The notes beneath the pieces were generated by a model. It had not been told where the DNA came from, searched no databases, and saw nothing but the letters and a program-made list of their open reading frames with translations. A stretch of DNA of 64,000 bases, taken from sequence record MZ475897.1. One strand, written 5' to 3'. How positions within the stretch are numbered: position 1 is the first letter of the stretch; every line of letters begins with the position of its first letter. A program made the translations under genes and the position numbers. Shown here in pieces: positions 1 through 57,067 of the stretch.

Positions 1-2037
1 ACCATTCGTTACTACGCGCCTGACAACGGTGAGCGCTTCTTCGATTATATGTCGATGCTGCGTCGTCGCCTGCCTGACAAGATCGTTGAGAAAGACGGTT
101 CAGCTTACTACCTCTTCGAGAACACCAAAGAGAACTCGAAGAAGCTGGCAGGCAAGTACGATAAGAAGTGGTTCAGTCGTAACAACCAGTTCAAAGTTCC
201 TGCGCCGGATGGCCACATGCAGGCTGCTGTTATCGTTGACTCATACCCGGCAATGCTGCCTGACCAGGTCGATGATGACGACGGTTCAAAAGCAATGGCT
301 CTGCAAGCGCGTATGTTCTCCGATGGCATCAAACGTTTCCGTGGCGGCATGCGCCGTAAGATGATGACTATCGTGGGCGTTAACCAGTTGCGCCAGAAGC
401 CTGCTGTAATGTTCGGTAGCCCTGAATATGAGCCAGGCGGGGACGCTCTCAAGTTCTATTGCTTCGCTGATGACACGCGCATTCGTACCGACCACGGTGT
501 GTTGACTGCGCCTCAGATTAAAGCGTTGCTGGACGAAGGCAAAGAAGTTTGTGTTGAATCGTTCGAAGGCTTCCAGAAGATTAACGGCGCGTGGAAAGTT
601 GAAGACGCTCCTTATCCGATCGAAGTCAATGCTGGTGGCCATGTGTACATCGGCAGTGCTGAGCATCGTCAGTTCACCTTCATGCATGACACAACCGCAG
701 AAGGTATGCGTGTACTTCGCCCTGAGTGGAACACGCTTAGCCAACTGGCTCAGTACCCTTCTGCGGAAGGTCAGTACGCTGCGATTCGTCTTGCGTCCGT
801 CGAAGAACTCAAGCAGAACACGCCTGATCAATTCGATGCCTCCAGCAAGAACATCGAGCTGGTGCTTTCTAACTGCGGTCCTGAGAAGCGTGATATTAAT
901 ATCCTCTCTCATGACGGCACAACGTACACAATGCCTGCTGTGCTGATCGACGCCGTTGGTCCTTACGATCACGTTGAAGACTTCGCGCATTACATTCAGG
1001 ACTTCCTGAACATCGGTATCTATGCGTATGCAGACAACTCCGGTATCTGGATTCCTGGTCTGGTTGAAGCTGACCTGCACAATGCTGTTGCACGCGATGC
1101 AGACTCTGGTTATCAGGGCGTTGACTTCTACGCTACCTCACGTCAGATCAGCTATCAGATGATGGCAGTTATCTCTGATGTGTTCCCAGAGCTGACCCGC
1201 TTCGTTCTGGACTTCAACGCTAATCACGCGGAAGAACAGGAAGAGCAAGTTTATCTGGCGCCTGGCTTTGACATTGCCGAAGCGATGGATGGCATTCTGC
1301 ACAAAGAGATCAGCGGCTACGACGACCAATACGATCTGCTGATGCAGCAACTGGCCTATGTTGAAGACTGGTTCAGTGTTGATGACCGTCTGCTGCCTGT
1401 ACCGTTTACGCTGCGTGCGCTTGACAAGCAAGTTGAGTTCTGGGATGTTAACGTCGATGAAACTTCCGTCGTTATCACCAACAACTTCGTTAGTCATAAC
1501 AGTGACGTTCGCGTTCGTCTGGCTTCTCGTGCTGTGCCTGAAGGCTGGCCGAAACTTAAAGACGCGCCTGGCGTTGTCGGTGAGAAGTCTGTTTCTGTTG
1601 AAGGCGGTACTGACCGCTATCGCTTCATTGCAGCCAAGACCATCAAGAACAAGATGGGCGGTATCCCTAACCAGCAGACGTGGTTACGCCTGTGGGAAGC
1701 TGACGGTAACGGTGAAGCGCGTGGCTTTGACCCAGTGTTCGATACATGGCACTACGTCAAAACTCTCGGCCTCGTCAACGGTACGCGCAAGTCATTCAAA
1801 CTGAAAGCGCCGTGCCCTGTAGCATCCGAAGTTAAGATGGATTGGGATGACTTCCGTACGCTGATCAACGGTAACAAAGAACAGATTGTTAGCGTATGCA
1901 AAAAGCTGAAAGTCAAACCTGTATCTCTGCGTCTGTGGGCGTTCAAGTTCGTGCAGTCCCAGAAAGGCAAAGATATGTTGAAAGCGTCGATCAGTAAGTC
2001 CGTTAAGAACGTTAACGACGACGAAGACGACGATTAA
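1..2037 (+). CDS. recA: RecA-like recombinase (5' truncated by window), intein-containing
   Basis: Frame is open from base 1. Walker B-like AVIVDSYPAM, then ALQARMFSDGIKRF and VGVNQLRQKPAVMFGSPEYEPGGDALKFY|SDVRVRL match the RecA core ([34 protein letters not shown]). Acidic tail DDEDDD. Confidence 0.92.
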   Translation, partial: TIRYYAPDNGERFFDYMSMLRRRLPDKIVEKDGSAYYLFENTKENSKKLAGKYDKKWFSRNNQFKVPAPDGHMQAAVIVDSYPAMLPDQVDDDDGSKAMALQARMFSDGIKRFRGGMRRKMMTIVGVNQLRQKPAVMFGSPEYEPGGDALKFYCFADDTRIRTDHGVLTAPQIKALLDEGKEVCVESFEGFQKINGAWKVEDAPYPIEVNAGGHVYIGSAEHRQFTFMHDTTAEGMRVLRPEWNTLSQLAQYPSAEGQYAAIRLASVEELKQNTPDQFDASSKNIELVLSNCGPEKRDINILSHDGTTYTMPAVLIDAVGPYDHVEDFAHYIQDFLNIGIYAYADNSGIWIPGLVEADLHNAVARDADSGYQGVDFYATSRQISYQMMAVISDVFPELTRFVLDFNANHAEEQEEQVYLAPGFDIAEAMDGILHKEISGYDDQYDLLMQQLAYVEDWFSVDDRLLPVPFTLRALDKQVEFWDVNVDETSVVITNNFVSHNSDVRVRLASRAVPEGWPKLKDAPGVVGEKSVSVEGGTDRYRFIAAKTIKNKMGGIPNQQTWLRLWEADGNGEARGFDPVFDTWHYVKTLGLVNGTRKSFKLKAPCPVASEVKMDWDDFRTLINGNKEQIVSVCKKLKVKPVSLRLWAFKFVQSQKGKDMLKASISKSVKNVNDDEDDD
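460..1500 (+). mobile_element. Intein (347 aa) in RecA after ALKFY
   Basis: Begins CFADDTRIRTDHG, has block-B-like SAEH, ends VVITNNFVSHN followed by Ser+1. Removing it restores ALKFY-SDVRVRL. No clear LAGLIDADG motif in the centre. Confidence 0.93.
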
Positions 2038-2081: not shown

Positions 2082-2465
2082 ATGCGTACTTTGATTCATA
2101 CCGCAGACGTAACCAATCTGTCTGTGCTGGAACTGGAAGAAGGCTCGGTAGCAAAGCCTGTTACTCCAAGCCTAATTTCTGATCTCAAGGAGTTGCTGTC
2201 GCGCGAAGACCTGAGTCAGAACATTCGCCACGTTGTGTTCATCTCTGCTGATCAGGTCGGTGTGTTTACCGAAGCTGAGATGATCAACTACTTCGATCCA
2301 ATCGAGCAGGTGTCTGAAATCAACGCAGGCAATATCGGTACTGTGCTGGCGATGCAGGTTATTCGTGTCGATGACAAGACTAATCTGATCGCAGTGGCTG
2401 CTGTCACTGATGTGGAAGAAGGCGTTACTATCAACGAGTTCAACGCATCACCTGTAAATCTGTAA
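2082..2465 (+). CDS. hypothetical protein
   Basis: 127-aa ORF with GGAG SD; no family recognised. Confidence 0.8.
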   Translation: MRTLIHTADVTNLSVLELEEGSVAKPVTPSLISDLKELLSREDLSQNIRHVVFISADQVGVFTEAEMINYFDPIEQVSEINAGNIGTVLAMQVIRVDDKTNLIAVAAVTDVEEGVTINEFNASPVNL

Positions 2466-2472
2466 ATAAAAC

Positions 2473-2498
2473 AAGTGAGGGCAATCGTGTCCTCACTT
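2473..2498 (+). terminator. hairpin
   Basis: AAGTGAGGGCA-ATCG-TGTCCTCACTT. Confidence 0.55.
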
Positions 2499-2535
2499 AA
2501 CTCACTCTGATAGGGCATTGACCCAGGAGATAAAC

Positions 2536-3258
2536 ATGACAATCAAATTTGTCGAAGTACCGAACGTTAGTATGTTCGAGGGTCTGGTGCATGGCGCCAA
2601 CCGACACGCACAAAACACCAACATCGGTGGCAAGGCTCGTTACGCATTCTACGTGGATGTGACAGAAGCTGCGGCCGAAGCTGCACTGTATTCAATGTTG
2701 CGCAAGAAGGCACACGCAGATGTTAGAGCTGTGGGCTACTCTGTTTCTCATACTGTGCGCGGTATGACTCAACCCAAAGAGATTCCTGTTTTCTTGTCCG
2801 ACAACTTGTCGCACATATCATTGGATTCTTTGAAACAAAATTTAGGTGAGTTGCTTCGTGCGCTATGCCGTTCGGCAGCCAGCTCTGATAGCAACATCAT
2901 TCTGTATTACCAAAAGGACATGGCTTTCATCAAAAGCAAAATGTTCGATTGGGTTCTTGAAAGCAAGTTAAGCAGACCTTCAAAAGTAGACTGCGAACTG
3001 TATGTTCGTTCCTCAAACATTGATCTTAACGTCCTTCTTAATATCGTTAGAGATCACGATTATATCGGACACTTTGCATCTAGCATACCACAAGAGATTA
3101 CAATAGGCTCTGATGCGAGTGCCATAGATGCCGTCAAGTTATGTGACACAGCCGACGTACTGGCTGCTCAAGGCCGCAAAGTGCATCTGTGCAATGACAT
3201 TTACCGCAAAGCGTTGTCTATCTTCTTTGCCGACGGTATTCCGCGTAATCAACTGTAA
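2536..3258 (+). CDS. hypothetical protein
   Basis: ORF; ATG 2536 follows AGGAGA SD. Confidence 0.8.
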   Translation: MTIKFVEVPNVSMFEGLVHGANRHAQNTNIGGKARYAFYVDVTEAAAEAALYSMLRKKAHADVRAVGYSVSHTVRGMTQPKEIPVFLSDNLSHISLDSLKQNLGELLRALCRSAASSDSNIILYYQKDMAFIKSKMFDWVLESKLSRPSKVDCELYVRSSNIDLNVLLNIVRDHDYIGHFASSIPQEITIGSDASAIDAVKLCDTADVLAAQGRKVHLCNDIYRKALSIFFADGIPRNQL

Positions 3259-3346
3259 ACCAAACACATTGCTGTGTGTAGTCTTTGGCCAAACTTAGGC
3301 TCGGGAGTCCAGGACGGGCTCCCATTTTTATTTCGGAGACAGAACA

Positions 3347-4411
3347 GTGACTGACATTAGAAGCAAAACAGCCTACGAATATCTGCATGACACCTATCTT
3401 GAAAACAATTTCTTTGTTGGCGTTCCTCGATCTAAACTCACAGCAAAGTTTCAAGAGTACCTGAAAACAACAAACGGTAAGCTGCATCGTCATGGTCTTC
3501 CTCTCGCTGACTTTATGACGTGGGCCAACATGCGCCCTGAGATCAAAAAGGGTGAGCAGCAATTTGATGCCGTCATGAGACTGCACAAACTTTCTTTTGA
3601 TGCAGCCGCCGTGTACACACAATTCGTATGGTCGTTTACCAAAGGTGTGTTCAAGATCGATCAAGAGATATGGAAACATCTCGCAGAGGGTGAGCCACCC
3701 AAGATACTGCCTTCCGATACGCTCAAGCGTTTGCCTAACTGGTCACAGTGGTTAGATACATCGCTGAGAATGGTGCGCCACGATAGCGCCAGTGATACGC
3801 TGTTTGCTCTGACCACTGAAGGCTTTTGGTCAACTTATCTGTGCTATGATCATCAAAACAGAACGCACATGTTCCTCGTAGCGCCTACCGTTATGCAAAT
3901 AGGCAAAGAGAGTTTCATCGCAACCACTCTGGTTATGTTTGACATAACAAAAGACCATGAGATGGAAGACAACATGGATTGGCAAATCACCGCCACATCA
4001 ACTGACGGTCAAACTTCCGTACGCTTTACGAAAGAGCATGAAACATACGGCAAGATATTTGACGGTTTGGTTAGTGCTTGGATTGATTCTGCTGTCAATG
4101 CGTTGTTGTTCGTCGCTTCATCAGTTGATAACGTGTATAAAGGAGGTGTAAAGGGAATCATCCCACGCAAACAAGGTAAGACGTTCAAAGTTCTACCGAT
4201 ACGTGACGTGCGTGTATGGCATGTAGGTTCCGAATTGCTTAACGAGATACGCCAGTATGAATCTGATGTAGCCTCAGAGAGTTCTCAGAATCGCCGTGCT
4301 CACATTCGTCGTGGTCATTATCATAACTACTGGTATGGCCCACGTGATGGTGAACGTGTACTAAAGGCCAAATGGCTTCCACCGTGTGTCGTTCGAGGCA
4401 CCGCAGAGTAA
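3347..4411 (+). CDS. AcrVA2-like (FinQ/AcrVA2 family) protein
   Basis: Ordered motifs WSFTKGVFKIDQEI...LKRLPNWSQWLD...GFWSTY...WHVGSELLNEIRQYE...RAHIRRGHYHNYWYG...KWLPPCVV parallel the AcrVA2 motifs as recalled (GIYQLDEEI, LNLPDWCVYVD, GFWAIY, IGERLGSEVRRY, HIRRGHWHGYW, RWQPAVFV). Confidence 0.75.
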   Translation: MTDIRSKTAYEYLHDTYLENNFFVGVPRSKLTAKFQEYLKTTNGKLHRHGLPLADFMTWANMRPEIKKGEQQFDAVMRLHKLSFDAAAVYTQFVWSFTKGVFKIDQEIWKHLAEGEPPKILPSDTLKRLPNWSQWLDTSLRMVRHDSASDTLFALTTEGFWSTYLCYDHQNRTHMFLVAPTVMQIGKESFIATTLVMFDITKDHEMEDNMDWQITATSTDGQTSVRFTKEHETYGKIFDGLVSAWIDSAVNALLFVASSVDNVYKGGVKGIIPRKQGKTFKVLPIRDVRVWHVGSELLNEIRQYESDVASESSQNRRAHIRRGHYHNYWYGPRDGERVLKAKWLPPCVVRGTAE

Positions 4412-4460: not shown

Positions 4461-5219
4461 ATGTCAAGAGTACAAACGTTGTTCATCCCTGAAGTTGAAC
4501 GTTTTGAAGCGTATGTTAAGTCGTTGCTGCACATGGCACGCACGCTAGATAACAGCGGTCGTCAATATGATCGCACGAAACATGTTGTCGTCGTTGGCTC
4601 AACAACTCGCACAGTCGAAGCCTACGTCAAAACAACAATCGGCTCTAACACAGTTCCAGATGGCGTTTTCTGCCTCGGACTGAACCAAGCACCTGACCTC
4701 TATAAGAAGTATGACTTCGGCTCTGCTCATGTTGTACTAATGTTCGATCTGATGTATACGTCGGAGAGCGCAATCCAATCACTGGCCCACAGACTGTTTG
4801 ATATTATCCTGACGCTCAAGCAGCGACCAGAAGACAGAGAACTGAAAAACCTTCCGATACATATCGTCGGCCAGAACTGGAAGGTGTGGGATGCTATGAT
4901 GGAGTCAGGTGCAGCAAACGTAGCAAACTACGAATGCTATTCTACGGGATTGCAGTTTGCCCCCAATCAAACTTTCGAAACAGCCTCATGCATTACGTTT
5001 GATCAGCTACTCACGCAGGACCCGAACACTTACGCCAAGCACGACATTTCGATTGGCCGAGAGTTCACCGTGATTGATCATGCTACGCTGATTCAAAAAC
5101 TCCATAACATCAAATGGGTGTTGCAGTCAGGCCAGACACAACACAAACTCATCCTCGACCACGCGTTTCAGCGCATTTTGTTCGAGCAATATCTCTGCTA
5201 TGAGTTTCAGGGTCTTTAA
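4461..5219 (+). CDS. hypothetical protein
   Basis: 252-aa ORF, AGGAG SD. Confidence 0.8.
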   Translation: MSRVQTLFIPEVERFEAYVKSLLHMARTLDNSGRQYDRTKHVVVVGSTTRTVEAYVKTTIGSNTVPDGVFCLGLNQAPDLYKKYDFGSAHVVLMFDLMYTSESAIQSLAHRLFDIILTLKQRPEDRELKNLPIHIVGQNWKVWDAMMESGAANVANYECYSTGLQFAPNQTFETASCITFDQLLTQDPNTYAKHDISIGREFTVIDHATLIQKLHNIKWVLQSGQTQHKLILDHAFQRILFEQYLCYEFQGL

Positions 5220-7699: not shown

Positions 7700-9538
7700 A
7701 TGATTGAAGTAAACTGTTTCGCAGATTTACGCACTACCGCTCCAGCAAAGGCTGGCGACATGGCGTTACTGAAACGTTACTATGACAAAGACAGTTCGTT
7801 TCGTGGGGGCGGCTACTTCATCGGCTTTCCGCAGACAAAAGATCTGCCCGCAGATGATGGTGGTATCACGGCAGTAGATGCAAACAAAAGTTTCTTCTGG
7901 AAGCGTGTTGTGAATGACCCAGAAGAGATTAACCTGTTCCACTTCGGTGGTCGCTGCGACGGCAAGACAGATGACAGTGACGCGTTCCTGCGTAACTTCA
8001 TGTGGACGTGCAAGTCTTCTGAGGGCAACGACACTATTGGTGTGCGCTTCCCGACAGGCACAACGTTGATCAACCCTATCGATCTTACTCACTTGGGTGA
8101 GATACCTGTGTTCGCTATCTATGGTGACACACGTTCTGATAAGGGCTGGCGTCCTCGTGTCAAGCTGATCAGTAACCAAGGCGAAGCTACTGTATTCAAG
8201 TTCAACGCTCGCCGCACTATTGTTCGTGGCCTGAACTGGAACGGTCAGTGCTATCCTGTGAAGGACGGCAAGAAGGTAGACGTGTCCACGATCGTGGGTG
8301 CTGTCATGCCTGAGCAGCGTTCAAACAATCAGATCTTCCTTGAGAACATCTGTACTATGGGTCAGTACATTGGCGTACAGTGCTTCCGTGCTGAGAGCAA
8401 CGGCGGATCTGCATTGAAGTTCCAAGACACCATCGATACTTCTATCACAGAGATCTATGGCAGTAAGAGCTACGGTGCTGTGATTGAGGCCAAGTGGTCG
8501 AACACAGTGCAGGCAGGTTGGAACCATTCGACTGCTGTGCGCTTAGAGAACGGTAACTTCCAGTACGGCTACGGCCCTGCTGTGTTAGACATGCCGCGTA
8601 TGACTCAGGCGTTCATGAAGAACGTCTGGATTGAGCACACGCGATTCCCAGGTAATATGAATGATGGTCAATGGGTGCTTGAAGGTAACTCGATTGAGAG
8701 TTCTGACAACCCACTCAATCTGGCCAACACTCGCTGCGTGATCAACGGCTACTACTTCCAAGGCGTTGGTACAATGAACTTGGAACGTGCGTCAAGCCCT
8801 GACAACTGGCTGAGTGGCTACGAGCGCGGCAACATTCGCACTGAGACGTACGGTATCATCATGACCGATGCTTGCTTCCGCGCAGGCTACTACACGGGCT
8901 ATAAGATTACCAACAATACAGATCAGGACAAATGGTTCTATCTGGGCAGCTACTCATTCCCGAAAGTGAATCAAGTGTGGCAGATTGAGCTGCTGGGTAC
9001 TGCACCAAACGTTGTACCGAACACGAAGCTGCAACAGCCTACGCAGATGGACGGCATGGGTCGTCGTGTTATCACAATGCAACGCTGCATCTCACCGCAG
9101 AAGAAAGTGTATGCCGATATGCACATGGAAGGAACGGACGCAATCGCCGATGTTGTGTACCAGCGCCTGTGGGAAGACTACGGCAAGGTGTGGGTTAAGC
9201 TAAAAGCCAACAGTGGCGATACTATCTTCAACCTGACCACCACCGGTCCAACTCGTTTCGAAGCAGGTGTTTGTACATTATTCAGCGACGGTCCAATTGA
9301 ATGCGTGGATCCCGTTCTGACCGAGATGACCACCAGTGTCGAAAAGAATCAGAAGGACTATGCGCGACCTCAGGCTCGTTTCAGTTTGCACAATGGCCTT
9401 GCAGGTGTAGGCGCAAACGAGCAGGGTCTCATCACTATTCAAACCAAAGACGCTACAGCACCGAAAGATACCACTAAGCCTGCTGGCTATGTGAGTGTCA
9501 ATATCAACGGTGTTGATCGTCTCTTGCCTTACTACTAA
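7700..9538 (+). CDS. AmsF/WceF-like EPS-acting protein (tailspike/beta-helix fold; putative depolymerase or tail appendage)
   Basis: N-terminal VNCFADLRTTAP...GGGYFIG...DDGG...FWKR...FHFGGRCDGKTDDSDAF head typical of tailspike/pectate-lyase-like proteins; G/N-rich beta-helix-like centre; C-terminal ARFSLHNGLAGVGANEQG...GVDRLLPYY resembles the AmsF family as recalled; no signal peptide. Confidence 0.6.
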   Translation: MIEVNCFADLRTTAPAKAGDMALLKRYYDKDSSFRGGGYFIGFPQTKDLPADDGGITAVDANKSFFWKRVVNDPEEINLFHFGGRCDGKTDDSDAFLRNFMWTCKSSEGNDTIGVRFPTGTTLINPIDLTHLGEIPVFAIYGDTRSDKGWRPRVKLISNQGEATVFKFNARRTIVRGLNWNGQCYPVKDGKKVDVSTIVGAVMPEQRSNNQIFLENICTMGQYIGVQCFRAESNGGSALKFQDTIDTSITEIYGSKSYGAVIEAKWSNTVQAGWNHSTAVRLENGNFQYGYGPAVLDMPRMTQAFMKNVWIEHTRFPGNMNDGQWVLEGNSIESSDNPLNLANTRCVINGYYFQGVGTMNLERASSPDNWLSGYERGNIRTETYGIIMTDACFRAGYYTGYKITNNTDQDKWFYLGSYSFPKVNQVWQIELLGTAPNVVPNTKLQQPTQMDGMGRRVITMQRCISPQKKVYADMHMEGTDAIADVVYQRLWEDYGKVWVKLKANSGDTIFNLTTTGPTRFEAGVCTLFSDGPIECVDPVLTEMTTSVEKNQKDYARPQARFSLHNGLAGVGANEQGLITIQTKDATAPKDTTKPAGYVSVNINGVDRLLPYY

Positions 9539-20063: not shown

Positions 20064-20165
20064 ATGATTAACAACTACTGCCCGTTTCGCGCTGTGATGT
20101 TCCACGCTTCAATCATCCTTCTCGCCCTTTGTTCAGGCGTTGTTTTAGCTCACGCTCATTTCTGA
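20064..20165 (+). CDS. 33-aa hydrophobic peptide (not in ORF track)
   Basis: GAGGA SD 7 nt before ATG; MINNYCPFRAVMFHASIILLALCSGVVLAHAHF; its stop overlaps the SD of the radical SAM gene. Confidence 0.55.
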   Translation: MINNYCPFRAVMFHASIILLALCSGVVLAHAHF

Positions 20166-20176
20166 GGAAGAAAATC

Positions 20177-21316
20177 ATGATGCGTAACTTCACGGCAATC
20201 CTGCCAGTAACCTGTAATGCCGATTGTTCATTCTGCCCTGAGAAAGAAATGGAGCAGAAAGCTACGAACCGCCAGTGGCTGACTAACCTCATCTCGCAGA
20301 TTAATGACCATGCTGGTGAGTTCGACCACGTTTCAATTTCTGGTGGTGAGCCTACGCTCAAGCCAAAGTTCCTGTTTGAAGTGATCGATGCAATTCGCAC
20401 TCAAACGGATATCGATAAAGTTGGACTCACGTCTAACGGTCGCTTCTTGAATAAGCAAGACAGCATCTTCCAGTTCCTTGATCTGAACACAGACGACATG
20501 CTGGAAAGCAAGCTGTCCCATCTGAATATCAGCCGTCACTCATTCGACGATGCCAAGAACAACGAGATCATGAAAGTGCGTTACACGTACACGCTTGATG
20601 ATCTTGTCAAGTTCCGCCGTCAACTCGGCACGAAGCTGAGCTTCCACATTAACTTCGTTATCAATGAGCACAACATCGATAACATTGAGTGGGAGTTTGC
20701 ACAGGCTAATCGATTCATGATGGAGAACCCGTGGATCGATGTAGTGTTCCGCGTTGACTATGCGAACGAAAAGCTGAATCGTCGTCTGCGTCGTTACGGC
20801 CTGTCTGTGCAAGCGTGGCGTGATGCAACTCGCGGTTCTATTCGTGATGAACGCATAGCGCGTGAGAAGCTGAAAAAGAAACCCAAACTTGTTCAGTTGT
20901 TTGATGGCGTGTTCAGCGGCACAACACAGGACAATGACGGTACATTTACCGATGCATGTCCAAGCTGTTTCGTACATCGCAGCCAGAAGATTCATAACAA
21001 CCACGCGTGGCTCAAAGCATCCTCGTACGAACCGAACGTAGATGAAGAGGAATACACTGAGTATGTGTTCCACATGGACGGTGAACTCTACTACGACTGG
21101 TCGCGTGCTGAACCTGTGCCTGCTGTAGAGAAGAAGCCACGCAAACAAAAAGCCATTCGTCGTGTTCAGAAAGAAGTGGATGAAGATGATATGGATGAAG
21201 ACATGCCTGCATCTTCTCGTATGGGTTGTCAGTATAGAACTGTCGGATGTTCTTACGGTGAATCAGAATCTGCTGGCGGCTGCTCATTTAGAACTACTGG
21301 CAGCTGTAGCTTTTAA
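20177..21316 (+). CDS. radical SAM protein with Cys-rich C-terminal tail
   Basis: CNADCSFC (CxxxCxxC), SISGGEPT, TSNG, NISRH. Confidence 0.9.
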   Translation: MMRNFTAILPVTCNADCSFCPEKEMEQKATNRQWLTNLISQINDHAGEFDHVSISGGEPTLKPKFLFEVIDAIRTQTDIDKVGLTSNGRFLNKQDSIFQFLDLNTDDMLESKLSHLNISRHSFDDAKNNEIMKVRYTYTLDDLVKFRRQLGTKLSFHINFVINEHNIDNIEWEFAQANRFMMENPWIDVVFRVDYANEKLNRRLRRYGLSVQAWRDATRGSIRDERIAREKLKKKPKLVQLFDGVFSGTTQDNDGTFTDACPSCFVHRSQKIHNNHAWLKASSYEPNVDEEEYTEYVFHMDGELYYDWSRAEPVPAVEKKPRKQKAIRRVQKEVDEDDMDEDMPASSRMGCQYRTVGCSYGESESAGGCSFRTTGSCSF

Positions 21317-34516: not shown

Positions 34517-35662
34517 ATGACTAATTCATCTCTGCCTTTCGTTTCTTGGTTCGAACGTGACAACTACTTTGATGACATGCTTGAGCGCCTCGATCTCAAA
34601 CGTCTCTGGGGTTATGTTGAAAAGAACAACGTGGTCAACAAGACTAAATACAATCTGCCTAACCTCACTGCCTACCACACCACCGAGCACATGAAAGAAG
34701 TTGCGTGCATTGCGTCCTCTCTACTGCACCGCGAGTCGAACCACGACTGGCAGATTCGTCTGATGGAATATCCGTTAGTCGTCGCGTGCCTTTTCCACGA
34801 TATGAATCACAGTCTGGGTAAATATACTGATGACGTGAACATCAACTATGCGCTCGTTGCGTTTAATGACTATCTTAATAGCAAAGATGAGAATCAGGGC
34901 AACGACAAGCTGCTGTTTGAATATCGCGATCAGATCTGTGCGCTGATTCGATGCACTCAATTCCCGTTCCATGACTCACGCAAGCCAACTAACCTGATGG
35001 AACGCTGCATTCGTGATGCGGACATTTTATACGGCCTGCAGGATGACGCAATGCCTGCTGTTGTGATTGGTCTACTGGATGAAGTGAACGTTCGTTTGGC
35101 TCCAGACAGCAAATACTCCACCGCACAGTGGGTGGCAGGTCGCATTGAGTTCCTGTTGTCGTGTGAGATGTTCACCGAAACTGCTAACAAAATCTTCTGC
35201 GATGCGCTCAGCACCAACAGTCCAAACTATCACGGTAATGTGCTGCAATCTTTCCTTGAGATGAAAGTGCGGCTGATCGATGTTCGTGCAGGTAAGCTGC
35301 GTGGTGGTGATGTTATCTGGACAGATACAGAGAACGACTCAACCTATCGTCCACGCCAGATCAGAAACATCGGCAATGAAGCACTACCAGACGTTAACGT
35401 GTATTTCACTGACGGTCAGGCTTGTGGTTATCGTAGCGGTGAGACCGTTCAGTTGCTGCCTAACACTGAGATGGTGAAGCTCGAAGACATTGTAGTTGGC
35501 GACATTATTCTTGAGCCTGCACAGGGTGAAGTGAAGCGCGATCTGCATCGCATCGTAAACATCGCTAACGGTGGCCTGCATGAAAGCGTGCTCTATCTCG
35601 AAAATGGCGGTGTGTTTACGTCAGCGCCCAAAGGCCGTGTCTGTCGTGTAGTCAGCAAATAA
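34517..35662 (+). CDS. HD-domain phosphohydrolase with C-terminal tandem repeats
   Basis: YHTTEH, CLFHDMNHS, IRCTQFP, IRDADIL. Confidence 0.8.
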   Translation: MTNSSLPFVSWFERDNYFDDMLERLDLKRLWGYVEKNNVVNKTKYNLPNLTAYHTTEHMKEVACIASSLLHRESNHDWQIRLMEYPLVVACLFHDMNHSLGKYTDDVNINYALVAFNDYLNSKDENQGNDKLLFEYRDQICALIRCTQFPFHDSRKPTNLMERCIRDADILYGLQDDAMPAVVIGLLDEVNVRLAPDSKYSTAQWVAGRIEFLLSCEMFTETANKIFCDALSTNSPNYHGNVLQSFLEMKVRLIDVRAGKLRGGDVIWTDTENDSTYRPRQIRNIGNEALPDVNVYFTDGQACGYRSGETVQLLPNTEMVKLEDIVVGDIILEPAQGEVKRDLHRIVNIANGGLHESVLYLENGGVFTSAPKGRVCRVVSK

Positions 35663-54968: not shown

Positions 54969-55039
54969 ACATATAGGACAAGTAGTGTCTGAATATGCTA
55001 ATATCGAGTGGTCAACGCTACTCATTAGGAGAAACGAAA

Positions 55040-57067
55040 ATGGCGAAAACGCCTAAAGCCGCAAAAGTCAAAAAGGGTGACGGCTCCCAAGATGGCTTCA
55101 CTATCGCAGAAGGCCTCGACGGGATTCGACTAAACCCTGGCATGTACATGGGTCAACAGGGTGCGGACATGGCGTATCGCGCTGTGAAAGAACCTGTGGA
55201 CAATGACTACGATGAATACATCGCAGGTCGTAACAAGTTGATCGAAGTGGTCATTGATTACGATAGCGACCTGAACATCGTAGCTGACCAAGCAGGCGGC
55301 ATTCCTACCGACTTTAAGAAACTGAAAGACGGTACGAAAGAAACGATCATGACCGCAGCGTTTAGCCGTGTTCATGCGGGTGGTAAATTCAACGATCAGG
55401 CATATAAGACCTCTGCTGGTACACACGGTGTAGGTGTAGCTGCACTGAACGCAATCTCCAGTCAGTTGCGTGTGTGGTCAATGTACAAAGGCAGTTGCGC
55501 TTATCAGATGTGGCAGTGTGGCGAAGTCAAGTCGGGCAAAGACCCTAAGAAAGTCAAGACCATCGACAAAGACGTTATGAGCCTGCTGCGCGATAAGAAG
55601 CACAGCAAGTACGGTACTGTGGTAGCGTGGACGCTTGACCAGACTGTTGTGTCTGCTGACGCACAGCGTGGTAAGAAGCTGCCTAAGAACTACCGTCACG
55701 CTGCTCCAAACCCTGCACAGCTTGGCGAGTGGCTGCGTAACATGTCAATGCTCAACCCAGGCCTTGAGATTCGCCTGACGTTGATTAAGAAGGGCAAGCG
55801 CAAAGAGTTCACGTTCATCAACAAGAAAGACCTGAACTATGTTGTGAAGACTATGTGTGAAGAACGCGAGCTGGGAACTGTCGGCAAGCCGTTCATCTTC
55901 AAGTCTGACAATATCACTGCTGCGCTTGCTTGGACAGATCATGCAGACACTGACAACTTCCTCAGTTTCGTTAACACCAGCCCAACAGTTGATGGCGGGT
56001 GGCACGTTGTGGGTTTCCGTGATGCGCTGTTTGATGCCATCAAGCCTTTCATGAAAGAGCCGAAAGGTAAGGGCAAGAAGAAGAAGCAGGGTTTCAAGCA
56101 AGAAGACTTGTTGATCGGCCTGACCGGTATGTTCGACTGGCGTATGCACGGTGCTCAATACACCTCGCAGGTAAAAGATAAGCTGGCCAGCCGCGTCGAG
56201 AAAGACGTGTACGAAATGCTGAAAGATGCTTTCGTGAAATACTTCAAGGACAATAAGAAGGTCGCTACGACAATCATCAAACGTGCCGAAGCGATGAACA
56301 AGGGACGTGAAGAACTCAGCGCTGTCGTTAAGTCTATGGCTGACACGAAGAAGAAGCTGAAAGGTAACGCACTGCCTGCCGACCTCGTTGTCGCAAACAA
56401 GTGTAAGCCGCATGAGCGCGAGCTTGTCGTGGTGGAAGGGGATTCTGCTGGTGGTACTGCGAAAGATGCGCGTAACCCTGACTATCAGGAAGTTATGAAA
56501 GCTGGTGGTAAGCCGCTGAACGGTCTGAAAGCAAGTCTGGCTGACGTGCTCAAGCACAAAGAAGTGCAGGGTATGCTGGTGAGTATCGGTGCTGACCTGA
56601 AATCGCTTGACCCGAAAGCAGAAGCGCCAAAGTTGAGCACGAAGAATCTGCGTATCGGCAACATCCTGTTCCTTGCTGATGCTGACCCCGATGGCTTCCA
56701 CATCAACGTGCTGTTCCTCGGCGTTATCTATCGCTTGCTGCCTGACTTGATGAAAGAAGGCCGTGTGTGGATTGTTGACGCACCGCTGTACAACGTTATC
56801 CATCAGGGCAAACACTACGGTGGTATGACGTTTGAAGAATGCCGTGCTAAAGCGCCGTCTGCTGTAAAAGACAAAGACATTGTACGCGCTAAAGGTTGGG
56901 GTGAAGTTGAACCTGACGTGCTTGAAGCAATCGCGTTCAATCCGAAAACTCGTCGTCTCATTCGTGTTAACCCGTTTGAGAACGTTGAGCAGGAACGTTT
57001 CTTTAGAGGTGTAGTTGCAGAAGATGCAGTTCACCGTCGTCGCTTGCTCGGTCTGGAGGCAGCATGA
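55040..57067 (+). CDS. gyrB: type IIA topoisomerase subunit B (GyrB/ParE-like)
   Basis: EGLDGIRLNPGMYMG, EPVDN, HAGGKF, GTHGVGV, VEGDSAGG, DADPDG, KGWGE. Confidence 0.93.
   Translation: MAKTPKAAKVKKGDGSQDGFTIAEGLDGIRLNPGMYMGQQGADMAYRAVKEPVDNDYDEYIAGRNKLIEVVIDYDSDLNIVADQAGGIPTDFKKLKDGTKETIMTAAFSRVHAGGKFNDQAYKTSAGTHGVGVAALNAISSQLRVWSMYKGSCAYQMWQCGEVKSGKDPKKVKTIDKDVMSLLRDKKHSKYGTVVAWTLDQTVVSADAQRGKKLPKNYRHAAPNPAQLGEWLRNMSMLNPGLEIRLTLIKKGKRKEFTFINKKDLNYVVKTMCEERELGTVGKPFIFKSDNITAALAWTDHADTDNFLSFVNTSPTVDGGWHVVGFRDALFDAIKPFMKEPKGKGKKKKQGFKQEDLLIGLTGMFDWRMHGAQYTSQVKDKLASRVEKDVYEMLKDAFVKYFKDNKKVATTIIKRAEAMNKGREELSAVVKSMADTKKKLKGNALPADLVVANKCKPHERELVVVEGDSAGGTAKDARNPDYQEVMKAGGKPLNGLKASLADVLKHKEVQGMLVSIGADLKSLDPKAEAPKLSTKNLRIGNILFLADADPDGFHINVLFLGVIYRLLPDLMKEGRVWIVDAPLYNVIHQGKHYGGMTFEECRAKAPSAVKDKDIVRAKGWGEVEPDVLEAIAFNPKTRRLIRVNPFENVEQERFFRGVVAEDAVHRRRLLGLEAA

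Follow-up and report, generated by a model that had tools for sequence, protein, structure and literature searches.

The window analysed here, a 64,000-nucleotide (nt) stretch of DNA that is 100% identical to Erwinia phage pEa_SNUABM_21 (MZ475897.1; 265,102 bp, isolated on Erwinia amylovora), carries at positions 3347-4411 a gene whose 354-residue product almost certainly belongs to the family of AcrVA2 and FinQ, as judged from sequence comparison and a predicted structure. Alleles of this gene are exchanged among jumbo phages of Erwinia and Dickeya as cassettes of the size of an open reading frame (ORF) between backgrounds that are otherwise 92-98% identical. On balance, we lean towards the view that the protein would be a functional, diverged member of the family, acting by an AcrVA2-type mechanism on a target other than Cas12a.

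According to Marino et al., AcrVA2 blocks the biogenesis of Cas12a by triggering co-translational loss of its mRNA, and its relatives include FinQ. AcrVA2 is the first bacterial example of gene silencing via recognition of a nascent peptide. A first-pass annotation of the same DNA had described the two proteins in these terms, in agreement with the published work, and had assigned the gene to the AcrVA2 family. The gene is one unbroken ORF on the plus strand, from a GTG start to a stop codon ending at 4411, and is identical to the deposited coding sequence (CDS) pEaSNUABM21_00248, labelled 'hypothetical protein' in GenBank; position 1 of the window lies at about position 201,102 of the record. 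The gene model is supported by a GGAGA motif 7 nt upstream of the start, by an ATG at the same start position in the nearest relative, L013, and by the hairpin that ends the preceding gene.

Evidence for membership of the AcrVA2/FinQ family

All family searches were queried with the window's own protein. The phmmer search against the PDB returned the AcrVA2 chain 7ci1_A (E 2.1e-13; query residues 87-349 against chain residues 72-316), and a profile of ten jumbo-phage alleles matched AcrVA2 with an E value of 4.9e-15 over chain residues 62-316. PHROG 6160, to which no function is assigned in that database, matched the protein with an E value of 4.9e-64, and the precomputed Pfam tag PF26125.1 'AcrVA2-like' is attached to it and to all of its close homologues. 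The CDS 'protein finQ' of an IncI1 plasmid (AP028508.1) was recovered by tblastn (E 5e-9) and aligned in pairwise BLASTP over residues 68-349 (E 3e-16). The window protein is not FinQ in the strict sense, being phage-encoded and only 23% identical to this plasmid protein.

The fold pointed the same way. An AlphaFold2 (AF2) model built on 106 diverse homologues reached a predicted local distance difference test score (pLDDT) of 91.4 and a predicted template-modelling score (pTM) of 0.89. In the PDB, Foldseek matched the model significantly to the AcrVA2 structures 7ci2 and 7ci1 alone (E 6.5e-13 to 1e-10, probability 1.0, template-modelling (TM) score 0.51-0.61), the best match being 7ci2_A (E 6.5e-13, probability 1.0, TM 0.54/0.60). 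The alignment with AcrVA2 resolves into about five to six ordered blocks, approximately W95-D105, P118-W135, G159-Y164, G294-E305, R316-G331 and W343-V349, which fits the five ordered motifs that the first-pass annotation had described as parallel to AcrVA2. The block match is far beyond chance, since the next PDB sequence stood at E 0.67 and the next unrelated structure at E 0.03. Profile and structure searches against AcrVA2 and FinQ had been suggested as a check of the family assignment; AcrVA2 was matched significantly by sequence, profile and structure and FinQ by sequence, and sequence, profile, fold and conserved motif together bear the assignment out.

The family is large. Among 1.84 billion representative proteins, 1,555 clusters matched the window protein at E <= 0.001, most of them best in the C-terminal region of about 100 residues. 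One family member, from Erwinia phage RisingSun (MF459646.1 / NC_042018.1, 128188-129126), is annotated as 'putative mycothiosynthase'. This label looks wrong, because a tblastn match (E 3e-8) and a predicted-fold match in BFVD (E 6.2e-15) place the protein in the AcrVA2-like family.

Conserved residues and domain architecture

Marino et al. reported that the W79A and D89A substitutions weaken AcrVA2 activity, and that H286A, R288A and H291A diminish it and restore cas12a mRNA and protein. The crystallised AcrVA2 chain is numbered one above the numbering of Marino et al., and this offset was applied in reading the HMMER alignment. The five residues align with W95, D105, H319, R321 and H324, respectively, and all five are present in the window protein. 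The last three make up the HxRxxH motif within HIRRGHYHNYW, the sequence singled out by the first-pass annotation. All 106 of the diverse family members aligned have H319, R321, H324 and also P130, and at least 90% of them share W95, P122, G159, G294, H326, W329, G331, W343 and P346. Two of the three residues of the AcrVA2 peptide pocket have equivalents (E116 and D150) in the HMMER alignment.

Conservation is unevenly distributed along the protein (Table 1). Mean pairwise identity, calculated per 30-residue block over nine Erwinia/Dickeya jumbo-phage alleles, was 15, 33 and 15% for residues 1-30, 31-60 and 61-90; 40, 39 and 32% for residues 91-120, 121-150 and 151-180; 23 and 15% for residues 181-210 and 211-240; and 34, 42, 53 and 65% for residues 241-270, 271-300, 301-330 and 331-354. 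The C-terminal 89 residues are thus the best-conserved part (42-65%). They are also strongly basic, with a net charge of +7 to +12 and an isoelectric point (pI) of 10.1-11.3 in nine of nine alleles (10.2 in the window allele), and the preceding segment, residues 181-265, has a net charge of -2 to -11 and a pI of 4.1-5.8 in all alleles compared. The N-terminal region is modelled as helices at residues 9-19, 28-41, 53-59 and 72-98. Such a conservation map is the pattern expected of a constant ribosome-docking or effector module combined with a variable recognition module, and we infer that the protein may be built in this way.

Table 1. Features of the AcrVA2-like gene and its surroundings (positions in the window)
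Feature	Position	Strand	Basis or remark
UvsX/RecA-like recombinase gene, 3' part; conserved left anchor of the locus	1..2037	+	PHROG 97, Pfam RecA
Two small upstream ORFs, 127 aa (2082-2465) and 240 aa (2536-3258), hypervariable	2082..3258	+	Comparison with related phages
Intergenic junction: small inverted repeat 3262-3284, then terminator-like hairpin 3303-3323 and T run	3262..3333	+	Terminator scan, fold
Shine-Dalgarno-like GGAGA	3335..3339	+	7 nt before GTG; read from the letters; kept in L013
AcrVA2-like gene (PF26125 / PHROG 6160), intact, GTG start	3347..4411	+	ORF, CDS, PDB, Foldseek, PHROG
Residues 1-90, helical N-terminal region, allele-variable, no sequence alignment to AcrVA2	3347..3616	+	AF2 model, identity blocks
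Residues 91-180, conserved core block with W95, D105, P122, P130, W132, G159	3617..3886	+	106-member alignment
Residues 181-265, acidic middle segment, most variable at 181-240	3887..4141	+	Identity blocks, charge
Residues 266-354, conserved strongly basic C-terminal module	4142..4408	+	Identity blocks, charge
HIRRGHYHNYW, HxRxxH motif (H319, R321, H324), residues 319-329	4301..4333	+	Family alignment, AcrVA2 alignment
Downstream 252-aa ORF, fast-diverging	4461..5219	+	35-39% identity in related phages

Exchange and selection of alleles

The AcrVA2-like proteins of these phages fall into types that are only 25-56% identical to each other. At least eight putative types were counted from the tblastn list and the nine-locus comparison, those beyond the nine loci being typed by identity to the window protein. 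The relatedness of these proteins hardly follows that of the phages carrying them: over all pairs, identity in UvsX and identity in the AcrVA2-like protein were correlated with r = 0.20. The UvsX proteins of SNUABM_33 and Dickeya phage AD1 are 98% identical and their AcrVA2-like proteins 28%; for SNUABM_33 and SNUABM_40 the values are 94% and 31%. The reverse is seen between AD1, with a Dickeya host, and SNUABM_30, with an Erwinia host, where the AcrVA2-like proteins (91%) are closer than the UvsX proteins (83%).

The DNA of SNUABM_33 and AD1 is 92-94% identical on both sides of the gene, and similarity is undetectable across the body of the ORF. It resumes about 40 nt before the stop codon, at the same point as in the comparison of SNUABM_33 with SNUABM_40. 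The intergenic spacers are 80-100% identical, and the bodies of the two small upstream ORFs fall to about 50%. These comparisons demonstrate that the gene is replaced as a unit of about the length of its ORF.

Within a lineage, by contrast with the low identity between types, the gene is constrained. In the lineage of the window allele, the ratio of nonsynonymous to synonymous substitution rates (dN/dS) came to 0.07 in the comparison with SNUABM_34 and to 0.10 in that with a metagenomic relative, values comparable to those of neighbouring genes, and the lineage is under purifying selection. The AcrVA2-like protein of the metagenomic relative is 82% identical to that of the window where UvsX is 86% identical. 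Rapid divergence in place was considered as a source of the low identity between types and rejected on these two sets of values.

For each allele the nearest relatives are other jumbo-phage alleles or metagenomic proteins, and so exchange seemingly takes place inside the jumbo-phage gene pool; two such metagenomic clusters have a longest contig of about 265 kb. The picture that emerges from the sequences is one of old, divergent and individually constrained alleles that are shuffled as whole cassettes.

The locus and its neighbours

The gene occupies a fixed place. In eight of eight related jumbo phages the order is a sigma-like factor, SSB, a UvsX/RecA-like recombinase, one or two small ORFs and the AcrVA2-like gene, and the gene lies downstream of the UvsX-like gene in all nine Erwinia/Dickeya loci compared. 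The phages sharing this syntenic locus belong to Alexandravirus, Sasquatchvirus, Yoloswagvirus and Rivsvirus. By tblastn the gene is present once per genome in 60 records of Erwinia phages and three Dickeya records, at about 198-209 kb in the members of the ~260-kb clade listed, with JA13 as the exception. More distant copies were found by tblastn in Klebsiella, Serratia, Salmonella and Moraxella phages.

The locus is bounded by the UvsX-like gene and a gene for an exopolysaccharide (EPS) depolymerase, the only neighbours to find a PHROG; the queries for this used the longer ORFs of 246 and 171 aa. The neighbouring products of 127, 240, 252, 219 and 270 aa had no match in Pfam or PADLOC, and those of 127, 240 and 252 aa had none in the PDB; PADLOC returned no match for the AcrVA2-like protein either. 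Since the flanking ORFs match no family, they offer no clue by association. The locus does not have the make-up of an anti-CRISPR (acr) locus, as Pfam, PHROG, PADLOC and PDB scans of the flanking ORFs revealed neither a helix-turn-helix or anti-CRISPR-associated (Aca)-like regulator nor an acrVA1-like gene. In related phages with a UvsX identity of 71-75%, the two upstream products are missing or only 26-38% identical. Between SNUABM_33 and AD1 both upstream ORF bodies diverge, and the spacers between them are 90-100% identical. The whole block of ORFs around the AcrVA2-like gene thus behaves like a row of cassettes that are shuffled independently.

The junction upstream of the gene (3262-3333) folds stably (-31 kcal/mol, z -3.45), its terminator-like hairpin with the T run closes the preceding gene, and it is kept 5' of at least four different allele types. 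No second copy was found within the 64-kb window when we looked for the 23-nt pattern seen in the alignment rows of Alexandra and SNUABM_30. In the minimum-free-energy fold, the GGAGA ribosome-binding site is base-paired with the stretch 3' of the first hairpin. The conserved element at 3262-3346 may serve as a junction for recombination, as a structure for the control of translation, or as both. A scan for sigma-70 promoters gave no enrichment over shuffled sequences, and therefore no promoter was called; scans of the whole window revealed no tRNA genes and no Rfam matches.

Other genes in the window were recognised by their PHROG matches. The EPS depolymerase or tail-spike-like gene (7700-9538; PHROG 4250, E 3.8e-195) is 77-80% identical in Yoloswag, SNUABM_5 and SNUABM_30, and was not detected in SNUABM_52, SNUABM_33, SNUABM_40, Alexandra and AD1 within the 7-kb flanks on each side of the match that were searched. 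A 395-aa ORF at 20129-21316 has a weak radical S-adenosylmethionine (radical-SAM) domain match (PHROG 1802/13987/2076, E 3.7e-9 to 3e-6) and may be a nucleotide- or queuosine-type modification gene. Further along lie genes for a phosphohydrolase (34517-35662; PHROG 16069, E 2.5e-60) and the large subunit of DNA topoisomerase II (54995-57067; PHROG 543, E 1.5e-149).

Host and CRISPR type

The first-pass annotation had placed the gene in an enterobacterial jumbo phage whose likely hosts are not known for Cas12a. The source record confirms the former. As to the latter, E. amylovora is described (PMC9004355) as having a type I-E system flanked by two arrays and a remnant type I-F array, with Cas12a unmentioned. 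The same publication suspects the E. amylovora plasmid pEU30 of anti-CRISPR activity against type I-E, and found no known anti-CRISPR homologue on it.

Proposed mode of action and alternatives

If the window protein works as AcrVA2 does, its conserved, basic C-terminal module, which contains the invariant HxRxxH motif, would bind ribosomes during translation and bring in an RNA-decay activity of the host. The choice of target would fall to the variable N-terminal and middle parts, which would read the N-terminal peptide of a single specific protein as it emerges, and the mRNA of this protein would be destroyed during translation. In a 2026 summary of Marino et al., association with ribosomes and polysomes is assigned to the C-terminal part of AcrVA2, and cutting of the mRNA to a cellular enzyme and not to AcrVA2 itself. 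The target would not be Cas12a. Most likely it would be a protein newly made during the long jumbo-phage infection, encoded either by an inducible defence gene of the host or by a mobile element, resident or rival, and different alleles at the same site would probably have different target specificities. The steps that we infer are docking on the ribosome, decay of the mRNA, the nature of the target and the allele-dependent specificity. The first-pass annotation had likewise proposed co-translational silencing of a non-Cas12a target, which is plausible.

Several observations weigh against this view. The identity to AcrVA2 is only 17-20%, and the first 85 residues or so cannot be aligned. The superposition on AcrVA2 is loose overall, with a root-mean-square deviation (RMSD) of 9-12 Å and TM scores of 0.5-0.6; because of this RMSD, the domain orientations or the N-terminal domain must differ between the two proteins. 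Scans of the window protein with local copies of Pfam-A and NCBIfam returned no family, so that the Pfam label is a precomputed one only; since the precomputed PF26125 tag exists, we take the blank as a gap in the library version scanned, from which the PF26125 model is seemingly absent. The mechanism of AcrVA2 is itself incomplete as to the ribonuclease partner. In addition, a blocker of new synthesis cannot clear defence proteins that are already there when a lytic phage enters, and the best-fitting targets are for this reason proteins first made after entry. Finally, all phages of the clade carry the gene, and at a single fixed site, whereas anti-defence genes are typically patchy.

This universal presence at one site could point instead to a role intrinsic to the phage, in which the protein tunes the phage's own genes or a housekeeping gene of the host within the ordinary course of infection and has no part in anti-defence. 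Two observations would fit such a regulator or host-takeover factor: the gene is present once, beside the genes for the sigma-like factor, SSB and UvsX, in every syntenic jumbo phage of Erwinia and Dickeya examined and across several genera, and it is under purifying selection comparable to that on its neighbours. However, alleles of 28-31% identity are interchanged between backbones of 94-98% identity, which is hard to square with a co-adapted target, whether phage-internal or housekeeping, and both known members, AcrVA2 and FinQ, act in genetic conflicts; we consider such a role rather unlikely. Slightly more probable, though still unlikely, is a conflict of the FinQ kind, in which the mechanism would be the one proposed above and only the kind of target would differ, this being a protein of a co-infecting jumbo phage, a prophage, a satellite or a plasmid. 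FinQ inhibits the transfer of the F plasmid and lowers tra mRNA (Marino et al.), 556 of 580 plasmid records with homologues are conjugative, and many allele types co-circulate in phages obtained in one sampling campaign on one genetically uniform host species. A biogenesis blocker also works best on genes first expressed after entry. The 91% identical allele shared by AD1 on Dickeya and SNUABM_30 on Erwinia does not favour it, as a broadly conserved target would fit equally well.

Different biochemistry of the C-terminal module, for example that of a metal-dependent enzyme or a nucleic-acid-binding protein without co-translational mRNA decay, appears improbable. The HxRxxH motif is without enzymatic or structural precedent (Marino et al.), the PDB holds no neighbour except AcrVA2, and the mechanism of AcrVA2 has been established for that one protein only. 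Against this, FinQ likewise lowers the mRNA of its target, and since neither the motif nor the basic module varies within the family, AcrVA2 included, a conserved biochemical role is the most economical explanation. Least probable of all, and very improbable in our judgement, is a true anti-Cas12a protein, kept because natural hosts carry a type V-A system; such a protein would inhibit Cas12a by binding the LSKT-containing peptide at its N-terminus. AcrVA2 is the only characterised family member with a known target, two of its three pocket residues have equivalents here, and the phages were isolated from stream water and soil, so that their natural hosts may exceed E. amylovora. Nevertheless, the CRISPR types described for E. 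amylovora, the low identity and unalignable N-terminal region, and the lack of an acrVA1-like or Aca-like neighbour in the scans all argue against it. In addition, the family typically occurs without Cas12a (Marino et al.), and one shared target is unlikely given the divergence of the alleles.

We therefore return to AcrVA2-type silencing of a non-Cas12a target as the favoured reading. In an extended and more tentative form of it, the gene might be a swappable specificity cassette: the alleles, at least eight of them and much diverged, would swap between conserved intergenic junctions and carry the same ribosome-coupled silencing module, each aimed at a target of its own. Such targets might belong to rival phages or to resident elements instead of to host defence. 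If this is true, the cultured phages would amount to a natural allelic series for target choice by the AcrVA2 family outside CRISPR.

Relation to published work

Relatives of AcrVA2 in comparable settings are already on record. Marino et al. described about 1,800 homologues that are carried by plasmids and megaphages and typically occur in the absence of Cas12a, and proposed other targets for them; Al-Shayeb et al. (2020) drew attention to AcrVA2-like proteins of huge phages. A non-Cas12a target is hence a published hypothesis for the family, its megaphage members included. The question of what the homologues outside Cas12a hosts act on has been posed in the literature, and the present gene adds nothing categorically new to it. 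Because relatives in hosts without Cas12a have been described, the find is an ordinary one apart from the swapping of alleles. A pan-genome survey of jumbo-phage anti-CRISPRs demanded more than 30% identity to verified Acr proteins, and for this reason would miss these genes. Among the entries listed in the supplements of Marino et al., the search for Erwinia phages yielded only a Pantoea entry.

To judge from the literature examined, two things are new: a series of alleles that are swapped as cassettes at one fixed locus in jumbo phages of Erwinia and Dickeya, and a better annotation for about 60 'hypothetical' genes, whose label in as many phage records warrants a change from 'hypothetical protein' to 'AcrVA2-like protein'. 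A cultured jumbo-phage clade of a plant pathogen thus holds one family member at a fixed site, where diverse alleles are exchanged and the C-terminal module alone is conserved. Near-isogenic phage pairs with different alleles have been identified among them for descriptive comparison of expression data.

Comparison with known systems

AcrVA2 of a Moraxella bovoculi prophage (7ci1, 7ci2) resembles the window protein in fold, family, length class, location on a mobile element, equivalents of W79, D89 and the HxRxxH motif, and the basic, conserved C-terminal module. It differs in sequence, with 17-20% identity and an N-terminal region of about 85 residues that cannot be aligned. The host of the phage gene is not reported to have Cas12a, and there is no acrVA1 or aca neighbour; AcrVA2 sits in an acr locus of a prophage, whereas the window gene is a fixed-locus gene of a lytic jumbo phage.

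FinQ, which acts in fertility inhibition by IncI-type plasmids, is homologous over residues 68-349 of the window protein and shares the C-terminal motif. Its effect on the tra mRNA of F shows that the family can act on targets outside CRISPR. In contrast to the phage protein, it is plasmid-borne and aimed at a rival plasmid, and its N-terminal and middle regions differ; it is no nearer to the phage protein than AcrVA2 is.

Further homologues are the jumbo-phage proteins of PF26125 / PHROG 6160, such as Yoloswag gp241 and those of Dickeya phage JA13 and RisingSun, which match over the full length and share the predicted fold (BFVD TM 0.59-0.83). The members in Yoloswag, Y3, Alexandra, the Rivsvirus-type phages and AD1 occupy the same syntenic locus as the window gene, and differ from it by allele type. 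A further homologue from a cultured phage is ORF43 of Shewanella phage vB_SbaS_Y11, published as a putative AcrVA2; a strain of the host genus is reported to have a type I-E system, and Cas12a is unmentioned there too. That phage, however, is a 63-kb siphovirus, similarity was the sole ground for naming its ORF43 an anti-CRISPR, and its description includes no series of alleles of the kind found in the Erwinia and Dickeya jumbo phages.

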